Virus record (IMG/VR): IMGVR_UViG_3300038441_001119
Span: 62,001 to 126,000 of that record
Length of the DNA stretch: 64,000 bases
Reading direction: 5' to 3' (one strand)
The translations under genes and the position numbers were made by a program. This document shows, piece after piece, positions 19,642 to 55,595 of the stretch; the stretch's first letter is position 1; each line of letters starts with the position of its first letter. Below the pieces are notes generated by a model. It was not told where the DNA came from. It ran no database searches and saw only the letters and a program-made list of their open reading frames with translations.

Positions 19642-21561
19642 TTATCTATGTTTCCTGTTCCTTACTTCGTCCAAGTCCAGCTTACCCGCAAGGATGTCTT
19701 CCATCTCTTGTCGCTTTAATCCAAGCAAATGCCGGATTGATTCTGCAAACGCAGGATTAGGGATGCGGAAGGGGAGGGTGATCTTGCCCCATCCGTTATT
19801 ACCCACAATCGCAGGGTCGAATAACCCTCCAGTGACAGGTGCCATGTTGTTCAGATTGAGAAGTTCCCCTTTCTGAATCTCGATGGCGTTCTTGTCATCC
19901 ACGTCTTTGTCAGTGGTAGGAGCAAGGCGCAGAATACCTTTACCAACATTACGAGGAGTAATACCGGCACCTACCATTGTGTTCATAGTCTTGTCCCATG
20001 AGAAAGGGACGCCCGGTTTAGCAGGAGTCAATCCCATACGCAGTGCTCTCCAGTACTCATCGTTTTGTTGACCGCGAAGAGTAATACCTTCCCTCAGGTT
20101 ATTGTAGGCACCAGAGGAGAGCATAACGTTGGACTCCAGTCCGGAAAGTCGTTTGGAACCACCGCCTTCTCCCGAACCTTTCGCAGGTTGACGGAACAAG
20201 TCGTAGCCACCCTGACCGCGAGAAGAAGCCTTACTCGACGAGGTATGGTGAAGTTTGAGCATGTAGGCGTTACCTACAAGCACAGGGTTCTCAAGAAATT
20301 GATTGGTCTCTGGATCGAAGATTTCCTCTTCGTCAGGGATTCCCGCTTCTTCCAGTTTTTGAAGAACGGTTTCGTACCACTTCTCGCCGGGTTTGGTGAA
20401 TCCGGGAAGTTTGATGGGCTTACCTTGAGCGGCAGCCACCTTACCCAACATGATCTCGTACAACAGGGAGTTGTTGGTACGCGATGGAATGGAAAGAGGA
20501 TTAAGAAGAACATCCAAAGGCTGACCATCCTTGGTGCGTGGCATCTTCTCATCAGGGATCACAAGGGATACGGTACCCTTCTGACCAGTACGGTAGACAA
20601 CCTTGTCACCCTCTTTGGTAGGGGCGTAGGCTTTGGTAACCACTTTGACACCTTTGGGTGTGTGGAAAACATCAACAACTTCAGCAGGATACTCTTCTTC
20701 CCAGACGGACGAAGAATCACCACGTGCCTGAGACATCGTTTTCGTGAGCTTGCCGACGTTTACACCGGCAGACGAAATAACACGAGGTCTGGTGGAAAGA
20801 ATGATAGGATCGCCGGGGTCTAGGATCTGACCTTTCTGAACAACTCCACGTTCATCCAGTTTAGCGAGTTGTTTCTTGTGGAACTTCTCAGGGAACAGGG
20901 AGCGGAAATGACCAAGGCCACCCTTGATGTCCCGGTCATACTCCTGTTCGTGTGTCTCCATGTGTTCGCTGACCATATTGTCTGCGAAACCTTTACGAAG
21001 GACGATAGCGTCGTCCATGGAGTAACCTTTATATGGAACCACAGCCACACGGGTATTCATTCCCATCGCCGCTGTGCCGTTGTCGTCCGTATAGTTGGAC
21101 GTAGCCAGCAGACCTCCTGCAGTGAACTTGTCTCCTACCTTTACCTTGGAAGTGTTATGGATACCAGACTTACGGTTGAAGCTCTGGTTATTGTAGATTG
21201 CTCGTTTCTTTTTCTCTCCAGTGGCGTTCTTGTAATGAATGTAATCAGGCGTGACTTCAGTCACCTCGCCATCTTCATCCGCAAACACAGCTCCCAGATC
21301 TTTACCGAGCTTTTCATCGAAGGAGAACCCACCATCGTCGGTGGTATCAAGGTTCTGCACCCATGGAGCTTCACGGTTGCGTAACGGCATAGCTTGGTTG
21401 TCGAATCGAGCGCCGTAGAATAGACGCGGACCCTGAACACCAGACTGAATAGGAATATGATTGATGTGAGTACCAAACAGATTCTCGTGAGAGATCAATT
21501 CGTAATCAATTTCATCATCATCAAAGTCCTGAATCTTACCGTTCCTGTAACCTACCGGCAT
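19642..21561 (-). CDS. rpoB: RNA polymerase beta subunit C-terminal part, fused to a beta-prime-like N-terminal segment
   Basis: GARFDNQAMPL, PYKGYSMDDAI, GDKVVYRTGQKG, DVLLNPLSIPSR, YMLKLHH, GGSKRLSGLE; tail GGLFDPAIVG..WGKITLP resembles RpoC DGLFCxxIFG..MGHIELA. Confidence 0.9.
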   Translation of the reverse strand: MPVGYRNGKIQDFDDDEIDYELISHENLFGTHINHIPIQSGVQGPRLFYGARFDNQAMPLRNREAPWVQNLDTTDDGGFSFDEKLGKDLGAVFADEDGEVTEVTPDYIHYKNATGEKKKRAIYNNQSFNRKSGIHNTSKVKVGDKFTAGGLLATSNYTDDNGTAAMGMNTRVAVVPYKGYSMDDAIVLRKGFADNMVSEHMETHEQEYDRDIKGGLGHFRSLFPEKFHKKQLAKLDERGVVQKGQILDPGDPIILSTRPRVISSAGVNVGKLTKTMSQARGDSSSVWEEEYPAEVVDVFHTPKGVKVVTKAYAPTKEGDKVVYRTGQKGTVSLVIPDEKMPRTKDGQPLDVLLNPLSIPSRTNNSLLYEIMLGKVAAAQGKPIKLPGFTKPGEKWYETVLQKLEEAGIPDEEEIFDPETNQFLENPVLVGNAYMLKLHHTSSSKASSRGQGGYDLFRQPAKGSGEGGGSKRLSGLESNVMLSSGAYNNLREGITLRGQQNDEYWRALRMGLTPAKPGVPFSWDKTMNTMVGAGITPRNVGKGILRLAPTTDKDVDDKNAIEIQKGELLNLNNMAPVTGGLFDPAIVGNNGWGKITLPFRIPNPAFAESIRHLLGLKRQEMEDILAGKLDLDEVRNRKHR

Positions 21562-21567
21562 AACTAA

Positions 21568-23427
21568 TTAATATGGAATGTAGTTATTGCTACCCGGTTG
21601 TCCCGGAGATTGCAAGAAACTATTAAGCAAGCCAGTTGCTCTGTTGATCCAAGGCACTTGGGGCGGCTCGTGTTCCATGAACTGAGCTTCAGCGGAAGGT
21701 GTGGCAGGCATCAAGTGTCTGCGAACCTGCGTGGCGTAATTGTGCATCGTGGAACCATAAGGGGTACTACGAAGATTTATGGGAGTTTGAATGCCCTTCT
21801 GACCTTGGGCGCCTACGCGGTTACCGATTCTAGCCGTTTGGATGTTCAGCTGACGAGGACCCATACCGTTGATGGCGTCTTGCTGAGGCTGCATGGAAGC
21901 AGACTTCACAGCATCAAGTGTCTTGCGAATACGATCCATCGAACTGCCAAGATTGATGGAGCCAAGGATGGGATCTTTCTTACCATCACCTGCACCGGAT
22001 TTCCCAGCCAGCTTCTGCGCTTCTTGATTGATCTTGAGGTTGATGTTCTCTTCCTGCAGTTTATCCAGCTTAGACTGCAAACTATCGGTGTCTACTTGCC
22101 CTGCGGCACCGCCGGCAGTTGCAAGAGGCGAGTTTGCCATGGAGGCAGGGGTACCCGGAGGGAGCGTAGCAGGATCAACTGCGTTGTTAGCAGGAGCACC
22201 AGCACGCATATTAGGATCATAAGCAGGCATAGTCGTAGCTGCTTTCTTCACATTGAGCTTGTCGATCTCGCCAGACAGCATGTTCATCTTTGTTTGTTCG
22301 CGTTTATGCACAGCCTTGCGTTTTTCTTCGGCTTCCAGTTGAGCTTGCTTCTGGGCTTCCATTTGCTCCTCTTGTTGGAGCTTGGCTGCCTCTTGCTGCT
22401 CTGACCATTGTTGCTTACGTTCGCCGGATTCGGTACGAAGTTGGCGACGAACGTCCTTACCGACATTACGTTGGATAGCGCCGGAGATAGGGATCTGTTC
22501 CTTCAGAGGGATACGCAGCTTGGTCTCGATGTCTCCGGGCTTACGTGTAGGAAGCGTCACAGACATGTCTCCAAGGTCTTCAGTCTTCTTACTGGACCTC
22601 CACTGGGCAATAGCAGTACCGAGGGCACCAAGGGCACCTACGCCTGCAGCAACACCCAATCCAGCTTTCATACCGGGGGACATACCTTCTTTCGGAGAAG
22701 AGACCGCTTTATTGATGTTGGGAATGTCCAACTGACTCAGCTTTTCATTACCCTTGAGTAGAAGATCCTTAGCAGGTATAGCAAGACCAGCAGCGACACC
22801 CTCAGCAGGACCAATACCTTTCCACACGCTACCAGCAGCAGCGCCGAAACCAGCATTGGTTGCCATCAGGTGACGACGATGAGGGTCAGCCATCGCGTTG
22901 GAAAAGTTTTCAATAGGTCCCTTGCCTTCTCCATAGGTAGCATAGTCAAGAGCGGGACCGCCAGCAAGGGCACCTCCTGCCAAGTGGGTAAGCCAGCTCA
23001 TGACCTTCCCCTTATCTGCAGCTTTCTTTACGACATACGGGATATGCAAGGCGTCTGCGAGGTGCTCAGACTCTTTGTTACCTTCAACAATGAGAGCCTT
23101 AACCTTATCCACAGAAGCACTCTTGATATGCAGCATCTTGCTGACAGCTTCCTTAGCCTTACCGCAACCACGATGCTCAGGGAGAAGTCCAATGGTGTAG
23201 TAACCTACTTTCACCATACCTTCCTTGCGTTCTTGCCATCCCACAAACCCCGCAGGAGACTTGTCGGAGGCCGAACGAATCATGTAGATGTCATCATGGG
23301 AATCAATGTTCAGACCATATGGCCACTTCCATGGAGCCTCGTCGTAGATAGTCTTGAGAACACCTTCGAGGATAGTACGGGAACTGGTGTCTGAAGCAGA
23401 CTTGGAAAACGATTCAACCAGATACAT
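21568..23427 (-). CDS. GNAT acetyltransferase domain fused to a virion-type low-complexity protein
   Basis: IGLLPEHRGCGKAKEAV (motif A), ALIVEGNKESEHLA (motif B); Gly/Ala-rich and coiled-coil remainder with KxA[SA] motifs. Confidence 0.65.
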   Translation of the reverse strand: MYLVESFSKSASDTSSRTILEGVLKTIYDEAPWKWPYGLNIDSHDDIYMIRSASDKSPAGFVGWQERKEGMVKVGYYTIGLLPEHRGCGKAKEAVSKMLHIKSASVDKVKALIVEGNKESEHLADALHIPYVVKKAADKGKVMSWLTHLAGGALAGGPALDYATYGEGKGPIENFSNAMADPHRRHLMATNAGFGAAAGSVWKGIGPAEGVAAGLAIPAKDLLLKGNEKLSQLDIPNINKAVSSPKEGMSPGMKAGLGVAAGVGALGALGTAIAQWRSSKKTEDLGDMSVTLPTRKPGDIETKLRIPLKEQIPISGAIQRNVGKDVRRQLRTESGERKQQWSEQQEAAKLQQEEQMEAQKQAQLEAEEKRKAVHKREQTKMNMLSGEIDKLNVKKAATTMPAYDPNMRAGAPANNAVDPATLPPGTPASMANSPLATAGGAAGQVDTDSLQSKLDKLQEENINLKINQEAQKLAGKSGAGDGKKDPILGSINLGSSMDRIRKTLDAVKSASMQPQQDAINGMGPRQLNIQTARIGNRVGAQGQKGIQTPINLRSTPYGSTMHNYATQVRRHLMPATPSAEAQFMEHEPPQVPWINRATGLLNSFLQSPGQPGSNNYIPY

Positions 23428-23468
23428 AGGACCCTTGTATCTTACTACCTTTCTGCCTTATTTGAAAT

Positions 23469-23510
23469 AAAAAAGAAAAGACTACCCCACCGGAAAGGCA
23501 GGGTAGTCTT
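23469..23510 (-). terminator. intrinsic terminator
   Basis: AAGACTACCC/GGGTAGTCTT stem + U tract. Confidence 0.7.
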
Positions 23511-23529
23511 GATGATACCATCCCAGAAA

Positions 23530-25200
23530 TTAATCGAACTGGTTGATGTGATACTCGGTGATCGTGTCGGTGGTGGTAACACGCACACGAATACCGTGCC
23601 CATCGTTCATACAGAGACCAGAAGCAGAACCAAGGGTAGGTCCTTCCATCTTGAGAGTCCTTGAAAGGGCCTCGATGGACTTGCGCACTTCGTGGTACTC
23701 GGATTTCAACATCTCAGGGAAAATGCATCCCGTAGGCTGTTGAGTATCCTGTGCTCCATCGAGAATGAACAAGGCAAACTGAGGATGATGGCTGAAGGCG
23801 GATTCATCGTTCCAGTGGGCTGGGTTCAGCGAAATCGCATTGACCTTCTTCCACGTTTGTCCGCGCAGTTTCCATTGGGAGGCTGCGGTAGGGGCGGTGT
23901 AGGTATAGTAAGAGAAGGGGTTGCGTTTTTCATGGTTATCCCACTGTAAGATAGGTTCGGCCTTCGAAAGCGATGCCGTAACAAACGACATGAAGTATCC
24001 TTGGAACGGAATGTATGCTTCGATACTGACGGCGGTGGGCAGCACAGTGCGGCGGAAACGAGTCCACGTAATGTTGGTACTACCGTGCACAGCACGAGGT
24101 GTGCGGGGGTTCGGTGGGGTTTGCTTGGTAGCAACCTTTCCAAACAATCCCGAGGTAGGGTTATTCGTGGGTTTGGTTGTGTTGGGTAGGACAGAGGGAG
24201 TCCACACCGTCCTGATTTCGTTCAGTTTTGCAAAGCGCCGACGGAAAGCCCCTGCAGCTCCGAGCTTGGTGACGATCTCTTCGGCTCGCTTGACGTTCTG
24301 AGCACCGGGAGGAGTCGATGGACGATTGAACTTGGTTGGATCAAGCCGGTCCCTCATGATGTTCTGGATGTGCTTCAGAGTGCTACCCTTTTGCACTTCC
24401 TCCAGAAGGTTCCCCGCAGCATTGCTCTTGATGTGATTGAAACCAGCAGGAGCCTGCGCCGAGCGCAACCACAGGAACCGATCACGTTTACGGGCTGTAG
24501 TTCTGTACAACTCATCGTGCAGGTTCTTGAACCACTCGATCTGACCTTGGATCTTCTCTGCGCGGAACAGTTTGTCTGCTGAAGCGATGTTGTTAGCCGT
24601 GGTAGCCTCAGCGCGAGTGAAGGTTGCCAAAGCCGATTTGAGGATACGGAACTCTTCCTTGCTCGCAGCATGCATCTGTTCGGCACTCTTGGTGAGACCT
24701 TTGTAGATGAGGTGAGAAGGAGGGGAAACCGCCATGTGCTGCCAGTCACCGGTTTTGGCGTCTCCCCACTCCTTGTCGGCGGAGTAGAAGACACCACTGA
24801 TGGTACCGCTCTCGACGTACTTCTTCATCGCCCGAACAGACTCAACGGTCTCGCCGGGTACACCATCCAGATTTCCCCACATAACGGAACGCAGGTTGAG
24901 GGTTTCCGGGTCAATGGTCACGAGGTTACCGTAGCGTTCGACGAAACGTCGGCAAGAATCGCAGCGATGCTCGGCGCGTGCTTGTTCGTTGTCCACGTGA
25001 TGCAGGAAGGTCTTGTGCAGATCGACGCCTGAAGAAGGCGTGACCGTGAACAGGATAGTGCCTTTGTCAGCGACAGCTTCGGCAAATGCTTTGCGTTGTC
25101 GCTTCAGGAAGTTGTGATATGGACGAGAGTCCTTATCAGTGCGAATTGCAGGTATAGCGGTCAGTGAAACCGCTGCAGGGGGTTGTGTCTTTTTAGCCAT
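23530..25200 (-). CDS. large hypothetical phage protein
   Basis: 556 aa; HRCDSC putative metal site. Confidence 0.8.
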   Translation of the reverse strand: MAKKTQPPAAVSLTAIPAIRTDKDSRPYHNFLKRQRKAFAEAVADKGTILFTVTPSSGVDLHKTFLHHVDNEQARAEHRCDSCRRFVERYGNLVTIDPETLNLRSVMWGNLDGVPGETVESVRAMKKYVESGTISGVFYSADKEWGDAKTGDWQHMAVSPPSHLIYKGLTKSAEQMHAASKEEFRILKSALATFTRAEATTANNIASADKLFRAEKIQGQIEWFKNLHDELYRTTARKRDRFLWLRSAQAPAGFNHIKSNAAGNLLEEVQKGSTLKHIQNIMRDRLDPTKFNRPSTPPGAQNVKRAEEIVTKLGAAGAFRRRFAKLNEIRTVWTPSVLPNTTKPTNNPTSGLFGKVATKQTPPNPRTPRAVHGSTNITWTRFRRTVLPTAVSIEAYIPFQGYFMSFVTASLSKAEPILQWDNHEKRNPFSYYTYTAPTAASQWKLRGQTWKKVNAISLNPAHWNDESAFSHHPQFALFILDGAQDTQQPTGCIFPEMLKSEYHEVRKSIEALSRTLKMEGPTLGSASGLCMNDGHGIRVRVTTTDTITEYHINQFD

Positions 25201-25397
25201 TGTGATAGGCGTGTCAGTGTGTTTTGGTGTCTTTGTTTGTGAAGTTCAGCAGCTCTAGCAATGATAGCCTCATCACTAAGGATCTGCAGCTCAAGCCAAC
25301 GAGCGAAGCCAGCGTCAACGATTTCCCGTGGACGCCCTTTGACTATTCGGACCTCTGCCTTTGCATTGGTCAGAGGAGTGTTAAGCTCCGAATTCAT
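25161..25397 (-). CDS. hypothetical protein
   Basis: 78-aa ORF. Confidence 0.5.
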   Translation of the reverse strand: MNSELNTPLTNAKAEVRIVKGRPREIVDAGFARWLELQILSDEAIIARAAELHKQRHQNTLTRLSQWLKRHNPLQRFH

Positions 25398-25977
25398 GTA
25401 CTATTTTCCTTTCCACCATGTCGAGCACATGCCCCCAGTCGAATTCATGAGTCGACAGAGCGTAGCTGTGCACGTCCTTACCGTCTAGATCTCGAAGACC
25501 TGTGGGACGCGTTTCGTCACGGAAGTAGGTCATAGCTTCTTCCAGACTGTCGGTCGCTCCACGGAAATCTTCCAGACCGCCGCCCGGGTAGTAGCTAGGT
25601 CCTGCGAATACCCAGAACCTTCCCATAGGAATTGCATTGAGAGGAGGGTTGGTCAGTACGGGGGTAGACAGTGCGTTGGGAGGAACAATTAGCTTTTCCT
25701 TTAATTCCTGCACCATCTTGTGAACAGAGGCCAAGGTGATGGGAGGCTTAAGGGAGACATACACCTGCTCACTGTCCTTGAGAATATGTCCTCCATCTAG
25801 AGGTGCTCCACCAGATGCAGCAGAAACGATCAACTCACTGGTTTCCGGTAACCCAAAGTCTTCCCGGAATTCACGGTTGGATTTCAGACGATCCACACTC
25901 CAACCCGGATCAATCCAGTAATCGTGGTTGATGCCGTTTACTGCGACTTTGATCTTGTTACGTTTGACGACGCTCAT
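25381..25977 (-). CDS. protein with N-terminal ubiquitin-like domain homologous to the di-Ubl
   Basis: KIKVAVNGINHDYWIDPG..REFREDFGLP aligns with KVIVHVNGNRSDFYVPYG..RQFKEDFALP. Confidence 0.7.
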   Translation of the reverse strand: MSVVKRNKIKVAVNGINHDYWIDPGWSVDRLKSNREFREDFGLPETSELIVSAASGGAPLDGGHILKDSEQVYVSLKPPITLASVHKMVQELKEKLIVPPNALSTPVLTNPPLNAIPMGRFWVFAGPSYYPGGGLEDFRGATDSLEEAMTYFRDETRPTGLRDLDGKDVHSYALSTHEFDWGHVLDMVERKIVHEFGA

Positions 25978-26152
25978 AGCCGTTGTTTTTTCCAGATTCC
26001 ACAATGTTGGCAACGAAGGTGTACTTCGAAACCACATGGCATGGTATGGGATGTTTCGTTGTAGATGTTGATGCTACTCTTTGTTTCCCACTGATGTTTG
26101 CACCCTTTGAAGGTGCCTATAAGTAGCCTGTATAGTAGACCTAACATAAGAG

Positions 26153-26227
26153 TGGTACCCCGTCTAGGAATCGAACCTAGATCTACCGCTTAGAAGGCGG
26201 CTGCTCGATCCATTGAGCTAACGGGGC
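26153..26227 (-). tRNA. tRNA-Arg(TCT)
   Basis: GCCCCGT/ACGGGGT acceptor, GCCGC-CTTCTAA-GCGGT, GGAT D-loop, ACCA. Confidence 0.92.
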
Positions 26228-26236
26228 TGAAGTGGG

Positions 26237-27499
26237 TTAGAACGCTTGGTACATCCGTTTACCGGAACGCTTCGAAGGGGTGAGCCTCAGGGTGGAGCCG
26301 TCGACATGCGTAATAAGAACCGAGGAGTCCGTATTGCGGATGATGCTGGCGATCTCACGGTTATACCAAGTGAGGGAACGGCTGTAGCTGCCTACGCGTG
26401 CATTGGGGTTATCCTCGTCCGTGTCATCAGTTTCAGCACGAAGGTACTGAACGTTGATGTAGTCGTCTTCATCAGGACCGAATTGCTGGAACGGAGAGGC
26501 AAACGACGCTTTGTAGAAAGCTGGAACTTCTTTGATATACTTCAGAAGTTTCTCGTCGACACTATCAAGGGCAGAAGCAATACCGTAACGCTTGGAGTTG
26601 CGGACGATATTGCGGATGGAGTAAGCGTAAGCAGCCGCGTGCTTGTCCTTCTCCTCCAGCTCGACGAAGTTATCGACCAGAGCAAGAACCGAAGTGCGCA
26701 GCTCGGCATCGAATTCAACACTCTCGTCGCTCTCGACATTGAGGAACGAAAGGAACTCCGAAGGAGGTTCATTGAACATCTTGGCTTCATTGATGATCGC
26801 CATCAGGGAGTCCAGCGACAAACCGAAGATAGTCTCGGCCGCCTTGATAACCGCATCCCGAAGATCACCCTCTGGGATCTGGTCACAGATGACAGCACGG
26901 AAAACGTCCTGACTGAGGGCGTCGTAACGCTTGTGGTAACGAACACGCCCCGGACGACTGTTGATGAAGGTGTTGACGTTCGGGTCGTTCGAGGTGAGGA
27001 CGAACAAGTGGGCAGTCGAAGAAGTACCGTCAAGAAGCGTGAGAAGATGAGCGGAATCCTCCTCGCTGTAGATCTTCTCGAACTCGTCCATGATGACGAC
27101 GCATTTGACAGGGATCTTCTGTAGGAAGTCCGAGAACTCTGAACCTTTGAAGAACGAGTTGATAAGCAGGACGGGCGACTTGGACTTGAGTCCGATCATC
27201 TTGGCGGCGACAGACTTGCCCGCACCCGATTTGCCACTGAGGAGAACGCCGATACCACGTTCAAGTTTGTGCCAAGCGGCGAGAGCGCGGTCAACGAACT
27301 TGTCGTCTTCACCGTAGATCTTTTTCGGAAGTTCGAGATCTTCTTTGATTTTCAGGTAGAAACCACTCATGTCGGCTGCGACTTCATACACGCCGACTGG
27401 GAGACCCTTGACGGGAGTGGATGCGCCATTGGTAAAACGAACTTCATTACCATTGGTGACGGAGTAAATGGGCGCTACAGTTGTTGTTTTTTCGGACAT
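26237..27499 (-). CDS. AAA+ ATPase
   Basis: Walker A GKSGAGKS, Walker B VVIMDEFEK, LLTLLDG, TSN, SRPGR arginine finger; start MSEKT. Confidence 0.9.
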   Translation of the reverse strand: MSEKTTTVAPIYSVTNGNEVRFTNGASTPVKGLPVGVYEVAADMSGFYLKIKEDLELPKKIYGEDDKFVDRALAAWHKLERGIGVLLSGKSGAGKSVAAKMIGLKSKSPVLLINSFFKGSEFSDFLQKIPVKCVVIMDEFEKIYSEEDSAHLLTLLDGTSSTAHLFVLTSNDPNVNTFINSRPGRVRYHKRYDALSQDVFRAVICDQIPEGDLRDAVIKAAETIFGLSLDSLMAIINEAKMFNEPPSEFLSFLNVESDESVEFDAELRTSVLALVDNFVELEEKDKHAAAYAYSIRNIVRNSKRYGIASALDSVDEKLLKYIKEVPAFYKASFASPFQQFGPDEDDYINVQYLRAETDDTDEDNPNARVGSYSRSLTWYNREIASIIRNTDSSVLITHVDGSTLRLTPSKRSGKRMYQAF

Positions 27500-27887
27500 A
27501 TTGGGTGCTGAGAGGAAATAAAAAAATAGAAAGGTGAAATGGAGGAGTGCCGCCATGCCGACACCCCTCCATCTCGTACGGTCTTGCAACCAACAGCAAG
27601 GAAACCCGTATCGCGTAAGCAGAACCGTTGCTCACTGGTTACGAGTTTCGAAGACAACCACATTGGAGGTTGACGCTAGGGTGACTTCTACCTTGCACTT
27701 ACCATTAGGCAGATGCTTATACCTTATACCTGAAATTAGTAACCACGGCAGGGCGTGTTAACTCCTGCTATCCTCTCCTGACAACCGATGGCCCGGTTTA
27801 AGAGGATCACCTGTTTGAGGCAGGTGGTTCGACACTTACGAACTTCGAGGTTTAACCAACAGACGACCCACCAAGGTCGACTGAAGA

Positions 27888-28676: not shown

Positions 28677-28709
28677 GGTATGCTGTGTGTGAGAAAGAGT
28701 GTATCTCTT

Positions 28710-28745
28710 TCCAAATTTATATAGCGCAAAATCAGGGGGTATTGC
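28710..28745 (-). promoter_or_regulatory. bipartite promoter motif, copy 5
   Basis: GCAA-N14-GCGCTATATA-AATT-TGGA + GAAAGAG/CTCTTTC hairpin. Confidence 0.65.
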
Positions 28746-28980: not shown

Positions 28981-29021
28981 GAGTCAGGAATGTAAGGGTC
29001 AGTTATGTATGGAAGACAAAA

Positions 29022-41701: not shown

Positions 41702-41747
41702 AAAAGAAAACCTCCCCAATTACGCATTGTTAAGAGGCGGGGGAGGT
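41702..41747 (-). terminator. intrinsic terminator
   Basis: ACCTCCCC/GGGGAGGT stem + U tract. Confidence 0.55.
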
Positions 41748-47038: not shown

Positions 47039-47043
47039 TTAAT

Positions 47044-47214
47044 TCACTTACTGTCTTTAATCTCTTTATCTGAGATGTCGATTTCCGGAAGGTCTTTGAT
47101 GACCTTGGCAGCCTTGGTTAGACAAGGCTCGCCGTTGACGATAGTCGTACAAGTTTTACCAGTTTCAGAGCAGGGCGATATCCCTTCTTCTACTACAGCT
47201 TTCTTGACAAACAT
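47044..47214 (-). CDS. 56-aa hypothetical protein (below cutoff)
   Basis: MFVKKAVVEEGISPC.. fills gap. Confidence 0.5.
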   Translation of the reverse strand: MFVKKAVVEEGISPCSETGKTCTTIVNGEPCLTKAAKVIKDLPEIDISDKEIKDSK

Positions 47215-47218
47215 GTGA

Positions 47219-47803
47219 TTATTTTATCAGAAACAATTGAATTTGAAATGGAAATTTATCCACCGCGACCTTCCCCATGAACAAACATTCATAGGTACTG
47301 GATTCAGGAGTACCGGTCATAACTGTCACCTCCACGCCGGGGTCTAGTTCCACTTCGGTAAGGGACTTGGAAGGAGTCATTATGACAATATTACTACCGT
47401 CTTCCGACACCCGCATCTGCGACGACTTCAGAAAGATGCTGAATTTATCGATCTTCAGTCGGATAGGGCCTGTCTCGTTAGAGTACAAACTTGAGGCCCA
47501 TTCCAGAACCGCAGAAGCATCCGCTGGATGGTTTCTGGCAAATTTCATCGCAGCATCAGACAGCCCCGGCAAGGGCTGCTTGGCTGCTACTTTCTCCGCC
47601 ATCTTTTCCGACGCTTTATGCAGATCCGAAAGGAAGTCAGTGTTGATGAATGCCATGGCCTTCTCCGTACCTGATTCAGGTTCCTTACGTTCGGGTTTAA
47701 AAGTGGCAGCTTCAAGACCGTCCATAAGCATGAGGGTCTTAGCTTTAAAACTTTCAGGAGTCTTGTCAGACCCTGTATCAGGAATCGGTCCTTTGTGTGG
47801 CAT
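47219..47803 (-). CDS. hypothetical protein
   Basis: 194 aa. Confidence 0.7.
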   Translation of the reverse strand: MPHKGPIPDTGSDKTPESFKAKTLMLMDGLEAATFKPERKEPESGTEKAMAFINTDFLSDLHKASEKMAEKVAAKQPLPGLSDAAMKFARNHPADASAVLEWASSLYSNETGPIRLKIDKFSIFLKSSQMRVSEDGSNIVIMTPSKSLTEVELDPGVEVTVMTGTPESSTYECLFMGKVAVDKFPFQIQLFLIK

Positions 47804-48915
47804 TATTCTTTGTCGCGAATCGCTTTCCAGTTGGGGAACCTTAGCTTACCATCCTTAGTATAGCCTTGGAACTTAACTGTTGCCATCTTGCCGATGTACT
47901 TGTCTTTGTCAATCCACAATTGACGGTTAAGTTCATCCGTACCAGTAGGCCCGGCTTCGGATGTAGTACCGTCTTCTAGTCTGACAATCCATTTGCCTAC
48001 GCGGTCGGCGAATTTACCGACACCCGCTTCCACACCGACAACCTCGAACTCTTTGTCGATGAACGTCTTTACTTTGAGCAGATGCTTGGTGCGTCCGAAC
48101 TGGTAACCCTGTTCACCCCACCGAACCATGGTGCCCTCGTAGCCGTTGCTTACGAATACCCGGTCCCAATCCTCCATGTCTCCTACGTGATCGACCTTGT
48201 ACTGAGGAAGTAAGATGATTTGCTCATACTCCGAATGTTCCCGCATATCCTTCAGGATGGATCGCATATCGTATAGACGAGATTCAAAGTTCTCTGAAAG
48301 ATTGATATCAAACATGTGGAACTCCAGAATCTTTGCCCGCTCAATGTCTTCAGCTGTGGCGTCAGGTTGCTTCGCCAGACTAATGAGCTTATTGAAGTCA
48401 TCCTTCAGCACATGAGCATACAGTTCTCCGTCAAAGATTAGTTTATCATTCTTAGGGTCGCTGTAGATGTGTTTCTGGAATGGTTCAAAGATGTGCGGAC
48501 ATGTGATGATGGGTTTGTTACCACGTGACCACATACCATCCTTGTTGATGAGACATCGCATACCATCCAGCTTAGGAGAGACGAACGCCGGGTATACTAC
48601 CTTGGATTCGTAATCTGGGAACTCATGCGCGAGCGTACACTCAAACATTACTTCCTTGGTTTCAGGATCATCAACATACCCTTTATCCCTTTTCTTTTGT
48701 ACCTTGGACTTTGCCTCCGCGATAGCTTGCGCCTCGCCTGTCGTAGCGTTCTTCTTGCCTACGTGTTTCGGAGTGCAGGTGGTCCATACATTGGTCGTCA
48801 GTTTGAATCCGACGTAACCTTCGGTAACACGGAACTTATCTCCTTCAACTTCGATAGACCATTGCTGGGTTTTCTTGGCTTTAGGGTTGTACTTGTACAG
48901 TGTTGCTATAATCAT
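47803..48915 (-). CDS. ATP-dependent DNA ligase
   Basis: SPKLDGMR, FDGELY, FHMFD, EGTMVR, LLKVK, KLRFP motifs. Confidence 0.93.
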   Translation of the reverse strand: MIIATLYKYNPKAKKTQQWSIEVEGDKFRVTEGYVGFKLTTNVWTTCTPKHVGKKNATTGEAQAIAEAKSKVQKKRDKGYVDDPETKEVMFECTLAHEFPDYESKVVYPAFVSPKLDGMRCLINKDGMWSRGNKPIITCPHIFEPFQKHIYSDPKNDKLIFDGELYAHVLKDDFNKLISLAKQPDATAEDIERAKILEFHMFDINLSENFESRLYDMRSILKDMREHSEYEQIILLPQYKVDHVGDMEDWDRVFVSNGYEGTMVRWGEQGYQFGRTKHLLKVKTFIDKEFEVVGVEAGVGKFADRVGKWIVRLEDGTTSEAGPTGTDELNRQLWIDKDKYIGKMATVKFQGYTKDGKLRFPNWKAIRDKE

Positions 48916-49595: not shown

Positions 49596-49631
49596 ACTTG
49601 GTTCTTACACGAACTGACGGATTAGGCCAGC

Positions 49632-50066
49632 TTAATAATACTGAGGAAAGGTTCCCGGGTCCGACCATTTGTCGGCCTCAGGTTTGTACGGAGGGGTGTC
49701 GTACTTACCCTGCTCTTCAATACGTTTCTGGATGTCTTTCGCAATCTTATCCAGAGGCATTGCAGGTACAGCAGGTTTAGGAGGAGGCATGTACCCCAAC
49801 CCGTAAGCTTCCTGAGAAACTTTGATATGAGCAGGCCACGATTTGAAGGGACCGGGGTTTAGTTCCCCCTGCAACCTACGGATTTCTTCCTTCAGGTTCT
49901 TGATCTTGATTTGCTGTTCAAGCTCACGCCGCTGGGCTTCCAAATCACGGATCTCCTCCTCGTAGTTCCGACGGCCTTGCCGTTCCTTGGCGTTGTCTAT
50001 GAGGTCTTGTTTAAAGTGATCCATAATACCGTTACAGGTCAGTGGTGGTAGTTGTTTTTGGCTCAT
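49632..50066 (-). CDS. coiled-coil hypothetical protein
   Basis: EEEIRDLEAQRRELE heptads. Confidence 0.65.
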   Translation of the reverse strand: MSQKQLPPLTCNGIMDHFKQDLIDNAKERQGRRNYEEEIRDLEAQRRELEQQIKIKNLKEEIRRLQGELNPGPFKSWPAHIKVSQEAYGLGYMPPPKPAVPAMPLDKIAKDIQKRIEEQGKYDTPPYKPEADKWSDPGTFPQYY

Positions 50067-50664
50067 TTGCTTTTGCGTAATCATCCAATGCTTTATGCAT
50101 TACTTCGTAACTCCCTGCGTCGATTGCAAGGAAATGCATCGCTTGGGAGTAGGCGTCATCCACTGCTTCATGGTGCACACCATAGCGTTGCATTTTCAAT
50201 CCTTTTGCAATAGGCAGATTCTTGATGGTGCGGTAACACCTGCTGTTCCATCTTCCCCACGGACGTTCGAGCTTTGCAGCCGCGTATGCCGTGTCGAGTA
50301 GAACATTGTCAAAGTCTGCTCCGTTTCCCCAGACTTTGACCTGACCACCCAGACGTTTCTGAGCAGTACCGATCCAGTCAGAGAACTTAGTCAGTCCCTC
50401 ACGGAGAGGTACGCTATCTTTCTTGAACTGGGCTTGGGCGTCCTTGGATTGTGAAATCCACCATAGAACCGTCGACACGTCCATCTTGAGACCATGGGTC
50501 GCTGCTTCTTCAGGATTTATGTATACCGAGAACTCCGAGTAAACGCCGAGCTTTGGTGCGAATGCCACGGCGCCAATTGCTGTGACAATCGACCCCGGAC
50601 CGTTGCCCAGAGTCTCAATGTCCAGCATGACATTTGTTTCCTTTTCTCCTAGTAGTATATTCAA
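50032..50664 (-). CDS. DEDDh 3'-5' exonuclease (RNase AS/DUF5051-like)
   Basis: MLDIETLG, VWGNGADFDNVLL, HEAVDDAYSQA. Confidence 0.88.
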   Translation of the reverse strand: MNILLGEKETNVMLDIETLGNGPGSIVTAIGAVAFAPKLGVYSEFSVYINPEEAATHGLKMDVSTVLWWISQSKDAQAQFKKDSVPLREGLTKFSDWIGTAQKRLGGQVKVWGNGADFDNVLLDTAYAAAKLERPWGRWNSRCYRTIKNLPIAKGLKMQRYGVHHEAVDDAYSQAMHFLAIDAGSYEVMHKALDDYAKANEPKTTTTTDL

Positions 50665-51026
50665 GCCAGTTCCAGTTCGATTTCTTTCTTAACGGTCTCA
50701 AGGGCTGCTTCCACTTGTTCCAAACTGATGAAACCACGGCTGGGATCGACTTGATCCTCATCAATGGATTTATTCAGATACTTGAGGATTTTGTCGATCT
50801 TCCGTTTCTGCAGTTCCGGTTTGATATCCGGTACCAGTCCCAGCTCATTCAGAACAGCCATGACCACCCATAGGTCTCCGAACTCGTACGTAACGCGTTC
50901 GCCATTGGTTAGGTCTTGTCCTGATTGAACTTCCTCAGTACCAAAGCGCATAGCCTTGGAACATCGTTGCCCGATTTCGCAGCATTCTTCAGCTGCTTGA
51001 TTTAGTAGTGCTTGTTCAAGTGTCAT
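50661..51026 (-). CDS. MazG-like nucleotide pyrophosphohydrolase
   Basis: AEECCEIGQ..SKAMRFG..EFGDL. Confidence 0.75.
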   Translation of the reverse strand: MTLEQALLNQAAEECCEIGQRCSKAMRFGTEEVQSGQDLTNGERVTYEFGDLWVVMAVLNELGLVPDIKPELQKRKIDKILKYLNKSIDEDQVDPSRGFISLEQVEAALETVKKEIELELA

Positions 51027-51342
51027 TCTTTTTCGATTCTATAATATCCCCGTCTGATTGTTCCAAGATCATGTCTATCTCCGCAGCCACTAGTGCTGCA
51101 GCCTTGACCAGATCCCGTAAACGATCTGCTCCTCTCGCTGGTTTCCAGTATTTATCTTCCCAAGGCCATAGCTCGGATTGCTTGATATGGGTCTCATTGG
51201 GACCATGTACATAGTGGTCCAGATAGCACATTGCTGCGTCCACCATCTCAGTACCTTCGTATTCGTCACTAGTATAGCCAAGTATTTCAACCTGACGCTG
51301 ACGTTCCGCTGCTATCAATTTTATGCCTCTGGATTCACTCAT
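51016..51342 (-). CDS. conserved phage protein
   Basis: IAAERQRQ..WPW..WKP..RDLVKAAALVAAEID. Confidence 0.7.
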   Translation of the reverse strand: MSESRGIKLIAAERQRQVEILGYTSDEYEGTEMVDAAMCYLDHYVHGPNETHIKQSELWPWEDKYWKPARGADRLRDLVKAAALVAAEIDMILEQSDGDIIESKKNDT

Positions 51343-51761
51343 TTCTCAAATGCGTCAGGGATACCGAGGGCAGTGGCGATCTTTTCCCAGTCCACGTAGT
51401 ACCTGTTGATACCACGCTCGTCTTTTGTATCAAAGATTACTGGTCCTGCCACATTCGTATCGTCGATATGGTAGTGACTGAAAGCTTTCGGGCTGGAGGT
51501 CCAGTGATGCTGCTGGGGGTTCTTGTTAACAGCCCATAGCGGGATGTTGTTTTTCTTGTACCATTCAATGGGCCCATCGAGGTGCTTACCACTTCGCATG
51601 GTCCATAGGATAATCTTACCGCCTTCTTCTACAATACGTCTAAGCACGGGTGCCGCACCGATGTCGTCTCCCAGATCAGGGAAACGATGTTTGGTGCACG
51701 TACCATCGAAGTCGACAGTAAAGATTTCCCCTTCAAATTTCTTTTTGGGTGTGTCTGTCAT
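51339..51761 (-). CDS. HAD-superfamily hydrolase
   Basis: VDFDGT, ILWTMR, SPK, IDD. Confidence 0.82.
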   Translation of the reverse strand: MTDTPKKKFEGEIFTVDFDGTCTKHRFPDLGDDIGAAPVLRRIVEEGGKIILWTMRSGKHLDGPIEWYKKNNIPLWAVNKNPQQHHWTSSPKAFSHYHIDDTNVAGPVIFDTKDERGINRYYVDWEKIATALGIPDAFEK

Positions 51762-51800
51762 AAAAACAAAGAACCCCGGCTACCCGTAGGCAGCCGGGGT
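51762..51800 (-). terminator. intrinsic terminator
   Basis: ACCCCGGCT/AGCCGGGGT stem + U-rich tract. Confidence 0.7.
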
Positions 51801-51814
51801 CTCAAAGGTTAAGT

Positions 51815-52027
51815 TCAGGAATCTTCTTTACCAATCAAGACGTTGTAGGTCTCGTTCAGATTAGATTCACGTTGTGCGTCGAGGGTTTGATACCTGTCGT
51901 ACAATTCGGAAACTCGGTCTTCTGCAACTCCTGCAGTGTGAAGTGCGGTCGTAAAAGCCAGACCTTTGATTTCTCGAATGCGGTCAGCATCAATCTCGTT
52001 GGCGCTCTTGTTCAATTCAGTGGACAT
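51815..52027 (-). CDS. small hypothetical protein
   Basis: 70 aa, N-terminal KSA. Confidence 0.6.
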   Translation of the reverse strand: MSTELNKSANEIDADRIREIKGLAFTTALHTAGVAEDRVSELYDRYQTLDAQRESNLNETYNVLIGKEDS

Positions 52028-52069
52028 GCATATGATTTATTATACGCGTGCCCGTTTGTCTATAAAAAA

Positions 52070-52462
52070 TTACAGAGCAGTCTCAGTCACAGTACCACTC
52101 TTCATGGTATGGACGATACTCTCATTAATTTCGTATGCTCCAGTGATAATGAAATCAACATCTGGAAATGCGTTGCGGATATTCTCTGCAACTTCGGTAA
52201 ACCAATGGGCAAACCTCGCATACACTGCGGTCTCCGGCATGGATGGAGCAACCCAAGCCGTATGGTACTCATAAACGTCCTCTTGCTCATCGTCGACAGG
52301 TTCAGCTTTGATGTAGAAAGTTATCTGTTTCTTCGATGATACGCGGTGTTCGAGTCGGTCCTTTGTGGTGACCTCCCCGTCGATATAGGCGCACTGGTAT
52401 TCAGTGAGTCCTTCTGCCTTAGTTTCTTCCTTCTTGGTCTCTGGTTCAGATGTCTGAGTCAT
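52070..52462 (-). CDS. hypothetical protein
   Basis: 130 aa. Confidence 0.65.
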   Translation of the reverse strand: MTQTSEPETKKEETKAEGLTEYQCAYIDGEVTTKDRLEHRVSSKKQITFYIKAEPVDDEQEDVYEYHTAWVAPSMPETAVYARFAHWFTEVAENIRNAFPDVDFIITGAYEINESIVHTMKSGTVTETAL

Positions 52463-52790
52463 TTAATGCGGTGTTGATTTGTTTTACTAGAGGAACGCCC
52501 TGTACGTTGTAAGCAGTCAGATCGATGGTTCGCTTGGTGTTAGAAATGGACGAGTAGGAATACTCAACCTGCAAATCCACAACCATGCTTGTGAATTCCT
52601 TTGTTCGGCTGATACCTGCTACCCATTCTTTGAACTTCCTACGAATGTCTTCGGTACTTGTAGCTCCCGGAAACAGATGGTCGGTAGTTCCTGTGAATAT
52701 CTTCGTGTTGTTATAGAATAGAAGGACTGAGAAGGTGGCCTTCTTGTATCCTTTGTTTTCTACAAAACTGTCAACTGCGTCTGCGGTCAT
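52446..52790 (-). CDS. hypothetical protein
   Basis: 114 aa. Confidence 0.65.
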   Translation of the reverse strand: MTADAVDSFVENKGYKKATFSVLLFYNNTKIFTGTTDHLFPGATSTEDIRRKFKEWVAGISRTKEFTSMVVDLQVEYSYSSISNTKRTIDLTAYNVQGVPLVKQINTALNDSDI

Positions 52791-53338
52791 ACGATCTCAA
52801 AGCCAATCTCCAGTGGGGCTGGAGCAGCCAATGGGGTTTTAGGACGGACCGACTCCAGAAGCTTGTCGATTGCTTTCAGAGACTTGGCGTCGGTCAGTAG
52901 ATGCTGGATTTGCTCCGCCTCACCGTCCAATGCTTCCTTGATCTTAAGCTGTATCTGCTTGGGATTCCATTGAGGCAGCTTGTTAGTGAGATCAACGATC
53001 TGCTTCTGCAGCTTATCAACACGCTCCCCTGCTGGGATCGGTTTCAATGCGATCAGGTAACCCTTGTTTGTGTTCGTGCTGAAGTTGTAGTTATTCTGGA
53101 TAGATTGCACCAGCGTAACTCTTTCGCTGGATAGATACTCCTTGGCGTCTGCCTCGGCAGCCGCCATCAGCTGTCCACGCAATGCCGCGATTTGGGTGGA
53201 GGCCGCGTCGTATTCCCTTTTAAATTCCTCCTGTGCACGCTGGAACATGGCCTTTGCAACCACCGTACGGGACGGGGTTGGTTCCATGTTCTTTGGGATG
53301 ATTGCAGCCTCTTGTTTAGTGACGATTCGTTTTGCCAT
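52787..53338 (-). CDS. helical hypothetical protein
   Basis: 183 aa. Confidence 0.7.
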   Translation of the reverse strand: MAKRIVTKQEAAIIPKNMEPTPSRTVVAKAMFQRAQEEFKREYDAASTQIAALRGQLMAAAEADAKEYLSSERVTLVQSIQNNYNFSTNTNKGYLIALKPIPAGERVDKLQKQIVDLTNKLPQWNPKQIQLKIKEALDGEAEQIQHLLTDAKSLKAIDKLLESVRPKTPLAAPAPLEIGFEIV

Positions 53339-53373
53339 GTTGCTCTTTGAAATGTCAGAGCAACCACGTTGGA

Positions 53374-54147
53374 TTACTCTGGAAGTTTGACTACCTTGCC
53401 GTCTAGATCGGCAGGGCTTCTATATTCCAGTTTACCGGTTCTCCTGTTACGGAAGAGCTGGTAAAGACGTCCATCACTACCAAACTTGGTTCCCCATGTA
53501 AGACGGGTGTCAATACCCGCACGTGAGGATTCAGGGCCAGAGAGGTTGTCAATAAACCCGAAGGAGCTGGCATGGACCGCCTGCATTTCAGGAGTGATCG
53601 ATTCGTCACTGGCAATACCACCGGGACCCATCTGGGTGATCCGGCGTGCAGACTCAATGAGCTGCATCGGGTTAATCTCCTCCAGAGGGGAAGACAGTGG
53701 GTTGTTTACCAACTGCTTCTCCGTATATTCGTCAAACGCAAGGGGTCCCAAGACAGACAGATTCTTTCTGTGGGCTGCCATACGCAGCAGTCTTTTACGG
53801 ACTTGACCTGCATCCGTGCGAATACGTTGTGAGAGGAGTTTGTCCGTGGTGAAGACTTTCTTGAAGGCTTGACTGTCCCGTTCATCGGTGTCAGCAAGCC
53901 CTCGGTTGACCGCTAGGAGCTTCTCGGTAGCCGCAAGGATACCGTTGATACCGACAGGCACATACGGCTCTTGGTCGGCGTCATAATCGTAGTCGTTGGC
54001 GCGTTCTATAGGCTTCTCTGATTTCTCAAGAGTAGTCTTAATCGCTGCAGGTGGTTGCGGGGGACTTACGGGTTCCGGCACGTAAGCGTTCTTCTGCATA
54101 TCGACTCTGTCAGCGAGCCAACTTTTGAATTTGTTTTTAGAGTCCAT
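53374..54147 (-). CDS. rpoB: RNA polymerase beta subunit middle part (fork loop / Rif-pocket region)
   Basis: INPMQLIESARRITQMGPGGI..VHASSFGFID..GPESSRAG matches [38 protein letters not shown]. Confidence 0.85.
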   Translation of the reverse strand: MDSKNKFKSWLADRVDMQKNAYVPEPVSPPQPPAAIKTTLEKSEKPIERANDYDYDADQEPYVPVGINGILAATEKLLAVNRGLADTDERDSQAFKKVFTTDKLLSQRIRTDAGQVRKRLLRMAAHRKNLSVLGPLAFDEYTEKQLVNNPLSSPLEEINPMQLIESARRITQMGPGGIASDESITPEMQAVHASSFGFIDNLSGPESSRAGIDTRLTWGTKFGSDGRLYQLFRNRRTGKLEYRSPADLDGKVVKLPE

Positions 54148-55595
54148 TAACGGTCAAGGTATGAAATCAGTCTCTCGAAGTCTGTATCGACATCTCCAGT
54201 AGTCCAGAACTCATCCGCGTTTTCCAGATAGTTCATGACAACAGCAGTGTTCACACTATGGGCACCGGACTTGAGCAGGTGATATTTAAGCTCCTGCTTC
54301 TGCTTGTACTCCTCCATGGCTTTTGCAACCTCTTCACGTCGGGTGGGTTGTTCTATCAGCTTGAGAGGGTCAATAGCCCAGTTTTTGAGAGCAAAGGCGC
54401 GACGAGGAGTAGGCTTCCGTTTGAAAACCTCACCATGTCGCTGCTTGAAGCTCTTCCAGCGTTTGATCTGTCTGTCATCATCAGGTGTTCTCTTACCATT
54501 CGAGTAACCTTGATACCACGAAATCCACCCTTTGGGATCACTTCCTTCAGGGAACCAACGTTCAGGCCAGTGTTCCATACTGGCAAGACGAGGGGTGTCC
54601 TCTGAGAAGATCTGGTCGTATGACTCTCCCATTTCTTCACCGGATAGATCAGGATTAAACTCACTGGAGGCGGACTTAATTACCTCAGGTATTTCCAAGT
54701 CGGGGAGGAAGTCCATTTTTTCCAGCTCTTGGTCCATCACTTTCCTTGCGGTTTCTTTCGCTTCCCATTGTTGTCTCCACGATGCGGACTTTGTGCGGTC
54801 AAACATGTTGGGAAGATTGCGGCTGGCAACCTTCTCGTGGATCATGGCGCGATTGAGTGCTTGGTTGATCAGTTCTACTTTCTCCTCGCGATTGGCTGTC
54901 GGGGGACGCATGAAACGAGGTACAAGCCTTTCGTAGGCTTTGTCGAACACGCGGGAATCGTATTTTGATCTGTTGGCTTCGACGATGTCTGCTCCCCACA
55001 TCTCCTCCAATTGCTTGTCGGGAATGCCCATGTCTTTCAACAGGGAGTACATGTGTAGGTTGGAGTTATGCACGGCAAGACGGTACTGCGCGGAATTGGG
55101 TTCGAAGTGAATACGGAAGGTATTCCCTGAACCGGGCCGTACGTTGAACTGAGTCTCGTAGTTACCGTTCTTTTGCTGACGTGTATAAACTCCGGGAAGG
55201 AGGCGGGATTGTGCGAGCGAGATGTATTCGTTGCCGTTGTGGATGAACGTACCCCTGTTCGTGAGGTAGGGAGTACGCATTAGGGTGGTTTTCTTTTGGT
55301 CGAGAAGATCGCCTGTCTTCTCGTCGAACAACTTGATGTTACCCCGGAGACGGCGCCCAAGGAAACGGTTGCTCATCAATGCCTTCTTCTGTTCCGGAAT
55401 GTCGTACTCATCCGGGTCGACATATTCCAGACCATCAAGTTCCATCCGCACACCTCCGTACGACTGGGGGAAAGATCTCTGCATCGCATCCATCGTTTGG
55501 GTATAGATGTCGTTGCGCAGGGTTTTGAAATCCGACGGGTCTCTGAGGGTGACTCCTTCAGGGATAGTCGGCTCTTCTTTCTTAGGTCCAGTCAT
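54147..55595 (-). CDS. rpoB: RNA polymerase beta subunit N-terminal part with extra C-terminal domain
   Basis: PYLTNRGTFIHNGNEYISLAQSRLLPGVY matches PLMTxxGTFxINGxERVIVSQLxRSPGVY. Confidence 0.85.
   Translation of the reverse strand: MTGPKKEEPTIPEGVTLRDPSDFKTLRNDIYTQTMDAMQRSFPQSYGGVRMELDGLEYVDPDEYDIPEQKKALMSNRFLGRRLRGNIKLFDEKTGDLLDQKKTTLMRTPYLTNRGTFIHNGNEYISLAQSRLLPGVYTRQQKNGNYETQFNVRPGSGNTFRIHFEPNSAQYRLAVHNSNLHMYSLLKDMGIPDKQLEEMWGADIVEANRSKYDSRVFDKAYERLVPRFMRPPTANREEKVELINQALNRAMIHEKVASRNLPNMFDRTKSASWRQQWEAKETARKVMDQELEKMDFLPDLEIPEVIKSASSEFNPDLSGEEMGESYDQIFSEDTPRLASMEHWPERWFPEGSDPKGWISWYQGYSNGKRTPDDDRQIKRWKSFKQRHGEVFKRKPTPRRAFALKNWAIDPLKLIEQPTRREEVAKAMEEYKQKQELKYHLLKSGAHSVNTAVVMNYLENADEFWTTGDVDTDFERLISYLDR

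Follow-up and report, generated by a model that had tools for sequence, protein, structure and literature searches.

A phage RNA polymerase probably divided among five genes, with a hybrid subunit that shifts the beta/beta-prime boundary into beta-prime

Based on profile searches, structure predictions and comparisons with related phage genomes, we find that a stretch of 64,000 nucleotides (hereafter the window; bases 62001-126000 of the 212,352-bp linear IMG/VR virus record IMGVR_UViG_3300038441_001119, here G000, rated 100% complete by CheckV) encodes a large part of a bacterial-type multisubunit RNA polymerase (RNAP) in which the boundary between the two large subunits, beta and beta-prime, is displaced. 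The three open reading frames (ORFs) in question, beta-N, beta-mid and a hybrid joining the C-terminal part of beta to the N-terminus of beta-prime (beta-C::beta-prime-N), are very probably three of the five functional genes that code for the subunits of one phage enzyme, the other two being beta-prime-mid and beta-prime-C (Table 1). We infer the function of this five-piece RNAP, and its assembly, from the sequences.

A first-pass annotation of this stretch, made from its letters and ORFs, had read the same minus-strand ORFs as the N-terminal, middle and C-terminal portions of a beta subunit alignable to cellular RpoB, the first two adjacent, the third about 32 kb away with its catalytic-side residues retained and its end continuing into an RpoC-like segment. 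Such a split, bacterial-like phage RNAP with a boundary shifted into beta-prime is supported here, and the catalytic remainder of beta-prime, which that annotation had proposed to look for elsewhere in the genome, was located together with a gene for the C-terminal part.

Over a span of 113 kb, the five genes are arranged on a single strand in the order of rpoB-rpoC, and all end in TAA. In a search of the whole genome, Rpb2_6, Rpb1_2 and Rpb1_5 each match once, i.e. there is one RNAP set in 212 kb. No RNA_pol_A_bac match indicative of alpha was found in G000 at E<=10; omega was not searched for. A sigma70-like ORF (phrog_351, E 1.3e-10; Sigma70_r3 and r2 under the Pfam cut-offs) is, from its sequence, a candidate initiation factor for the phage RNAP. 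Long ORFs of the record are almost all on the minus strand, and the majority have neither a PHROG nor a Pfam match.

Table 1. RNAP genes of G000 and other features of the window; aa, amino acids.
Feature	Position	Strand	Remarks
beta-N	window 54147-55595	-	482 aa
beta-mid	window 53374-54147	-	257 aa
beta-C::beta-prime-N hybrid	window 19642-21561	-	639 aa
beta-C portion of hybrid, aa 1 to ~540	window 19942-21561	-	double-psi barrel, flap, C-terminal clamp anchor
beta-prime-N portion of hybrid, aa ~547-639	window 19645-19923	-	TAA stop 19642-19644
beta-prime-mid	G000 60624-61844, ~1.4-0.15 kb before window start	-	406 aa
beta-prime-C	G000 4721-8197 = L008:2721-6197:-, ~54-57 kb before window start	-	1158-aa ORF
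tandem inteins in beta-prime-C	G000 5597-7195	-	in trigger-loop motif
intein 1	beta-prime-C aa 335-707		373 aa; Cys1, ends ..HN before S; two LAGLIDADG motifs
intein 2	beta-prime-C aa 717-867		151-aa mini-intein; Cys1, ends ..SN before S
sigma70-like ORF	G000 172535-173311 = L082:1045-1821:-	-	258 aa
AAA ATPase (phrog_2376)	window 26237-27589	-	between or beside RNAP pieces
ATP-dependent DNA ligase	window 47803-48915	-	between or beside RNAP pieces
DEAD-box helicase	window 60018-61751	-	between or beside RNAP pieces
NADAR-domain protein	window 55923-56471	-	PF08719, E 4e-26
619-aa ORF	window 21568-23427	-	ends six bases before hybrid start
tmRNA	window 9396-9856	-	103 bits, E 3.8e-39
five tRNA genes	window 3622-3775, 9124-9291, 26153-26227	-	
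abiF RNA match	window 41710-41746	-	38.8 bits, gathering score 37

The beta pieces and the displaced boundary

Beta-N and beta-mid overlap by a single base (TAATG, the ATG of beta-mid lying on the TAA of beta-N), and the hybrid gene is found 31.8 kb from beta-mid (53374 minus 21561). The three pieces are colinear on phrog_24349, at positions 96-202, 384-535 and 598-1131 of 1191, and each aligns to bacterial beta chains of the PDB. Beta-N covers residues ~55-250 of bacterial beta, phmmer placing it on 51-212 (E 5.8e-7), and its AlphaFold2 model, with a predicted local distance difference test (pLDDT) score of 80.8, is matched by Foldseek at E 1e-10 to the bacterial beta1/beta2 lobes, including a Mycobacterium tuberculosis B1-B2 domain structure; the lobe region comprises residues ~20-290. 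No Pfam Rpb2_1 or Rpb2_2 match was obtained for beta-N. Beta-mid matches Pfam Rpb2_3 (25 bits, cut-off 21) and aligns to E. coli beta 425-580, the segment of the fork and Rif region (phmmer, E 1.5e-7). The hybrid spans positions 4-370 of the 373 in Pfam RNA_pol_Rpb2_6 (E 1.3e-54), is aligned to Thermus beta 517-1085 of 1119 in the PDB search (bacterial beta chains, E 2.6e-47), and yields a model that Foldseek matches to bacterial beta at E about 1e-35 with 24-27% identity. The motifs MDDA, GDK..GQKG and KLHH are present in its translation. As judged by these alignments, the homology of the beta pieces to bacterial beta is far beyond chance. The hallmarks of a bacterial-type beta are all found, i.e. 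an Rpb2_6 barrel with GDK...G.KG and KLxH as well as N-terminal lobes and a fork; the subunit is nevertheless not one polypeptide ending at the beta C-terminus, as it occupies three genes, the last of which runs into beta-prime.

Residues ~315-482 of beta-N form a helical, Trp-rich accessory domain, for which Pfam, PHROGs and the ESM Atlas provided no lead; a candidate similarity to a capsid/protease cluster of the Atlas was rejected, its best template-modelling score of 0.45 being judged not meaningful. In G002, one of five related IMG/VR genomes (G001-G005; 167-204 kb, CheckV completeness 94-100%), a helical domain homologous to this C-terminus is instead joined to the N-terminus of beta-prime-mid, and beta-N of G003 is just 372 aa long. 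Hence, the accessory domain moves between RNAP pieces.

In the hybrid, beta ends at about residue 540, and the last ~95 residues match the extreme N-terminus of beta-prime. A profile of the last 120 residues, built from 18 family members, hit the first ~54 residues of beta-prime (~6-54) in 26 of its 30 PDB matches, with a marginal best E-value of 0.04. Using hhalign, the tail was placed on Salmonella beta-prime 29-64 (E 8e-4), and BLASTP of the hybrid against concatenated Salmonella beta and beta-prime extended 63 residues past the end of beta. Pfam RNA_pol_Rpb1_1 gave no match to the 102-aa tail alone. Across 20 relatives, the tail is conserved and terminates at the same point.

The first-pass annotation had also reported that the zinc-binding Cys cluster of the beta-prime N-terminus is missing, with the GLF..I.G motif joined almost directly to a G.I.L motif. 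The loss itself is borne out, since the hybrid contains no Cys and ~50 residues remain after GLF..I.G; the Cys count of beta-prime-mid is likewise zero, and Salmonella beta-prime has four Cys in the 36 residues that follow its GLFC..IFGP motif. The N-terminal zinc-binding element is absent, too, from the phage isolates Arash (Salmonella) and D69 (Vibrio) and from 20 of 20 aligned relatives. The direct join was not reproduced: MAFFT aligned the tail with Salmonella beta-prime just up to GLF..I.G, without a sensible placement of the remainder, and the correspondence of WGKITL to MGHIEL, after the missing zinc ribbon, is by eye only.

Complex prediction of beta-prime-mid with hybrid residues 440-639 gave a score of 0.74 (best of three controls 0.00), a mark reached by 51 of 78 solved complexes and by 2 of 108 mismatched pairs, and since bacterial RNAPs have already been solved this score shows likeness, not binding. 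Runs agreed in at least 76% of contacts, the partner pLDDT was at least 75, and the tightest predicted contacts are formed between tail residues ~587-606 and beta-prime-mid 66-73.

The beta-prime remainder, its relatives and the origin of the pieces

Beta-prime-mid matches Rpb1_2 (E 1.1e-16) and aligns to E. coli beta-prime 181-512. Its Mg-binding motif reads NLDHDGD, all three Asp of D-x-D-G-D being kept; NADHDGD, GADFDGD and NADFDGD are found in relatives. Beta-prime-C matches Rpb1_5 (E 4e-11) and, weakly, Rpb1_4. Two stretches of it, separated by ~585 residues, align to E. coli beta-prime, one to residues 590-930 and the other to the C-terminal part. Judging from its alignments with relatives, which start at aa 14-27, translation probably begins at an ATG 20 codons in. 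By position, Cys 244, 301, 307 and 310, ahead of the inteins, look like the second zinc site. We note that these four positions hold the only extein Cys of the RNAP set, the other four polypeptides (1784 residues) being without any cysteine.

Two tandem inteins interrupt the conserved trigger-loop motif of beta-prime-C, with nine extein residues between them. They are recognised by Hom_end_hint (E 1e-14), LAGLIDADG_3 (E 2.5e-10) and Hint (E 9e-9), and their extein flanks realign to beta-prime. Both begin with a near-identical N-terminal block. Following the predicted excision, beta-prime-C should comprise about 634 aa, comparable to the 606 aa of Arash gp216.

The pieces are widely conserved. 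The hybrid has 628 database homologues at E<=1e-10, mostly 633-647 aa long with 53-73% identity over 98-99% coverage, on contigs of 185-225 kb, and three contigs of different origin encode exactly the same protein; beta-N has 416 metagenomic homologues, mostly of 470-510 aa. A locus search of viral contigs with a single protein returned no relative; an alignment-based scan did find relatives. All five RNAP regions were mapped in G001-G005. The cuts between beta-N and beta-mid, between beta-mid and beta-C and between beta-prime-mid and beta-prime-C are present in all five, and the cut between beta-prime-N and beta-prime-mid in four, G005 having a 1224-aa protein instead. The pieces vary in spacing, order, strand and intein position: beta-mid is a separate gene of 229-246 aa in G002-G005, with G001 having a 483-aa version that contains an intein, the gap between beta-N and beta-mid measures 0.7-2.4 kb with other ORFs in between, and inteins reside in beta-mid (G001), in beta-C (G002), at D-x-D-G-D (G004) and in beta-prime-C (G002, G003 and G004).

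Further domains accompany the pieces in these genomes. NUDIX is found on the N-terminus of beta-prime-mid in G001 and G002 (L037:5718-7766, L056:5879-8461), an Acb1/2H-phosphoesterase and DUF6624 on the 1401-aa beta-N of G004 (L077:2974-7179), and a LAGLIDADG intein within beta-mid of G001 (L034:5712-7163); among the database homologues of beta-N, many contain PF13563, PF23474 or PF00293. Hybrid relatives of 54-55% identity on JAQGPI010000198.1 and JAQGPI010000625.1 (L083 and L084) were binned in a Verrucomicrobiaceae metagenome-assembled genome, which hints weakly at the clade's host range unless the binning itself is at fault.

As to the origin of this arrangement, beta-N, beta-mid, the hybrid and beta-prime-mid all align in order along a single protein in Arash (gp206, 1525 aa) and in D69 (D69_0261, 1527 aa), at 24-33% identity. 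Beta-prime-C has its counterparts in Arash gp216 and D69_0264, both without the intein region. When the G005 fusion was used as query, hundreds of proteins combining Rpb2_6 and Rpb1_2 were retrieved, in sizes of 940-1264 aa (beta-C through beta-prime-mid) and 1456-1540 aa (full fusions), or longer with inteins. In a tree of the hybrid-homologous region (48 rows, Salmonella and Acinetobacter as outgroup, quick search), the full fusions are basal and a clade starred 99 holds the forms with split beta; in this clade the 940-1264-aa forms constitute a basal grade, with most ~640-aa forms nested. The fused P0265 and P0115 nest among the split rows, and the split G001 groups with fused forms, suggesting that some fusion or fission events were recurrent.

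The simplest history, read from sequence, is therefore an old beta::beta-prime fusion at the base of the group followed by serial fissions, given the colinear four-piece proteins of Arash and D69, the basal fused forms and the nested ~640-aa forms. The ancestral fusion would survive as the ~1460-1525-aa protein of Arash, D69 and many metagenomic phages; cuts between beta-N and beta-mid and between beta-mid and beta-C would have come later, and the last cut, between beta-prime-N and beta-prime-mid, would have left ~95 beta-prime residues on the beta-C gene. Loss of the zinc ribbon likely predates the fissions, as Arash and D69 lack it as well.

Alternative explanations, assembly and genomic surroundings

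The polarity of this history could in principle be reversed, with the many-piece state ancestral and the long Arash-type and 940-1264-aa proteins being secondary fusions. Iyer et al. have argued for a pre-cellular many-subunit state of phiKZ-type enzymes (PMC7824862), and the placements of P0265, P0115 and G001, together with a root on a long branch, are compatible with such an order. We consider it improbable, as the outgroup beta is unsplit and the beta-prime N-terminus contiguous there, which makes every cut derived, irrespective of where the phage clade is rooted. In addition, the full fusions are basal to the split-beta clade starred 99, and the pieces are about 25-27% identical to bacterial subunits over their whole length, unlike phiKZ-type proteins.

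It is also conceivable that the split exists at the gene level alone and that the pieces are rejoined into canonical beta and beta-prime, either by split-intein trans-splicing or by frameshifting between beta-N and beta-mid. Inteins are rife in this RNAP family, the overlap of beta-N and beta-mid by one base would suit a frameshift, and metagenomes are known to contain 'fractured genes' whose products are joined by split inteins (PMC2677866). Trans-splicing is nonetheless very unlikely, because no Hint or intein domain or motif is present at any piece terminus, four of the five pieces are free of Cys, and neither starts nor ends contain intein-like blocks. Frameshifting sits poorly with the relatives, in which other ORFs separate beta-N from beta-mid, and the conserved hybrid C-terminus and the TAA at the end of all five genes speak against rejoining in general; we give this explanation little credence. 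Least credible of all is that the fragments are decaying rpoBC remnants, or artefacts of assembly or of recoded stops. The genes are indeed scattered widely, just 8 of the 226 long ORFs stop at TAG, and CTA is found in the anticodon loop of one tRNA. Yet every piece is an intact ORF under genetic code 11, recoding as a source of false splits is rejected by the TAA stops of all RNAP genes, and neighbouring pieces lie in different frames or tens of kb apart. Pseudogene-like decay was looked for, and none was found: the pieces are conserved at full length, at 40-73% identity, in hundreds of proteins and five other genomes, without frameshifts or stops within those of the relatives, with catalytic residues kept and with the same hybrid on three independent contigs.

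Several points weigh against our preferred reading of a functional five-piece RNAP derived by fusion and fission. The evidence for the enzyme consists of gene sequences and predictions. The beta-prime identity of the tail combines marginal E-values (0.04 and 8e-4) with positional consistency, and the complex score could stem from bacterial RNAP structures that the model has memorised. The catalytic motif NLDHDGD departs from NADFDGD, the sigma-like ORF falls short of the Pfam cut-offs, and intein splicing is predicted, with intein 2 terminating in SN instead of HN. The tree is a quick one with a long-branch warning where Arash and D69 meet the outgroup, and the split label requires 2-4 changes on it.

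For the five-piece RNAP, we propose the following assembly. The five polypeptides would associate non-covalently into an alpha-less core, as in phiKZ/AR9-type phage RNAPs. The hybrid would covalently tether the C-terminal clamp anchor of beta to the N-terminal clamp segment of beta-prime, which in turn would pack onto beta-prime-mid, and the sigma70-like protein probably directs initiation. In Arash, the fused beta::beta-prime (gp206) is the most abundant protein of purified virions, in which gp216 was also detected (PMC10585845); by analogy, a virion-carried early polymerase is possible in this phage, too.

A wider proposition is that a very large and essentially undescribed clade of ~165-225-kb phages erased the universal beta/beta-prime boundary by fusion and then drew it anew time and again, through fission, shuffling of domains and invasion by inteins. 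This would have resulted in two-, four- and five-gene versions, with inteins in nearly every catalytic motif, of an RNAP that is zinc-ribbon-less, alpha-less, sigma-dependent and possibly virion-carried, and in which the hybrid replaces alpha as assembly tether. We hold this full scenario tentatively, finding it slightly easier to doubt than to accept. If true, the clade-wide redrawing amounts to split-site experiments on the RNAP core performed in series by nature.

Multisubunit RNAP ranks with the most conserved machines of biology, and the ends of its large subunits are nearly invariant in cells. The present arrangement suggests that the beta/beta-prime boundary is not structurally sacred, as a phage lineage has apparently fused it and then cut at new places, and hundreds of relatives keep the hybrid. 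Full fusion, three-piece and five-piece forms may thus provide a graded natural series for the assembly of an alpha-less core, with bearing on the need for the beta-prime zinc ribbon and on the accumulation of inteins in polymerase active sites. In practical terms, annotation pipelines that call the hybrid plain 'beta' miss its beta-prime part.

Turning to the surroundings of the RNAP genes, the NADAR-domain protein is encoded directly upstream of beta-N. The 619-aa ORF adjoining the hybrid has a weak GNAT-like N-terminus (below cut-off) followed by a long low-complexity stretch rich in Ala, Gly and Gln; in one relative (L011) a small GNAT gene lies upstream of the hybrid. For seven of ten large ORFs scanned, no family was found. 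The transfer-messenger RNA (tmRNA) of the window is a full-length Rfam match, and three of the five tRNAs have an 8-base anticodon loop according to ARAGORN, the one with CTA among them. Apart from TAG, the 226 long minus-strand ORFs end in TGA (84) or TAA (134). The rarity of TAG together with the CTA tRNA hints at amber suppression or recoding, of which the RNAP genes are independent.

Comparison with known systems

The closest isolates are Arash and the Vibrio phages D69, D181 and D148, at 32-33% identity over 92-98% of the hybrid. In common with Arash and D69, the present phage has the beta::beta-prime junction, no N-terminal zinc cluster and the cut between beta-prime-mid and beta-prime-C; RNAPs of this type are, as far as known, alpha-less, and come with an annotated phage sigma factor. 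In Arash and D69, beta-N to beta-prime-mid form one ~1525-aa protein adjoining the portal gene, whereas here the homologous and colinear counterpart, with its junction kept, is cut into four genes over 57 kb instead of a single protein of ~1500 aa, and beta-prime-C carries two inteins. The Arash paper labels the proteins beta and beta-prime, and those of its passages that were searched make no mention of a fusion (PMC10585845).

The phiKZ/AR9-type enzymes of jumbo phages (Chimalliviridae and relatives) have beta and beta-prime spread over 4-5 genes and lack alpha and omega; the present phage likewise uses five genes and has no alpha match (omega was not searched for here). In both, the cut in beta-prime follows directly on the double-psi barrel of the active site, close to where cyanobacteria separate gamma from beta-prime (PMC7598289). 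Those RNAPs come in two sets (virion and non-virion), are very divergent and have neither sigma nor a hybrid subunit (PMC7598289, PMC7824862). In contrast, the present phage has a single set whose subunits are 24-27% identical to the bacterial ones, together with a sigma-like ORF and the hybrid subunit, and phiKZ-type PHROGs score far below phrog_24349 for the ORFs of the window.

A further likeness exists to mReC, the multi-subunit RNAP-encoding Caudovirales of Weinheimer & Aylward (2020), which are uncultured phages with an RNAP alignable to cellular beta and beta-prime that branches outside bacteria (PMC7481178). The group was defined by beta and beta-prime matches of at least 800 aa with NADxDGD, with a Gp23-type capsid where detected, and its paper mentions neither splits nor inteins (PMC7481178). 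Compared by these criteria only, the present phage differs, as its pieces measure 257-639 aa, the 1158-aa piece is without the motif and the motif reads NLDHDGD; no match to the Gp23 capsid (PF07068) was found in G000. The comparison suggests that filters such as at least 800 aa plus NADxDGD would exclude pieces of this kind. From the same metagenome as the relative L022, a contig with matches of 1056 aa and 1291 aa, 119 genes apart, was reported not to cluster with mReC (PMC7481178).

Among cells, Helicobacteraceae and Wolbachia have rpoB joined to rpoC (Zakharova 1999; Lane & Darst 2010), and E. coli RNAP tolerates being split at the sites used by archaea and chloroplasts (Severinov 1996), as cited in PMC7483510. 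Cyanobacteria and plastids have beta-prime cut near the same place as in this phage. We know of no cellular lineage in which such a fusion goes with a cut ~95 residues inside beta-prime, nor of one that lacks the N-terminal zinc ribbon of beta-prime. Catalytic RNAP subunits are known to host inteins elsewhere, archaeal RpoA being one case; these occupy the most conserved motifs and have a Hint domain, with or without a LAGLIDADG endonuclease. Here, by comparison, the trigger-loop motif of a phage beta-prime holds two, with nine residues between them.

The open-access literature that was searched contains no description of the hybrid subunit, the five-gene layout or tandem trigger-loop inteins, which is not proof of novelty; the hybrid-subunit layout thus appears undescribed. 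Phage multisubunit RNAPs as such are already known, and what appears to be new is this combination of split genes with a hybrid subunit.

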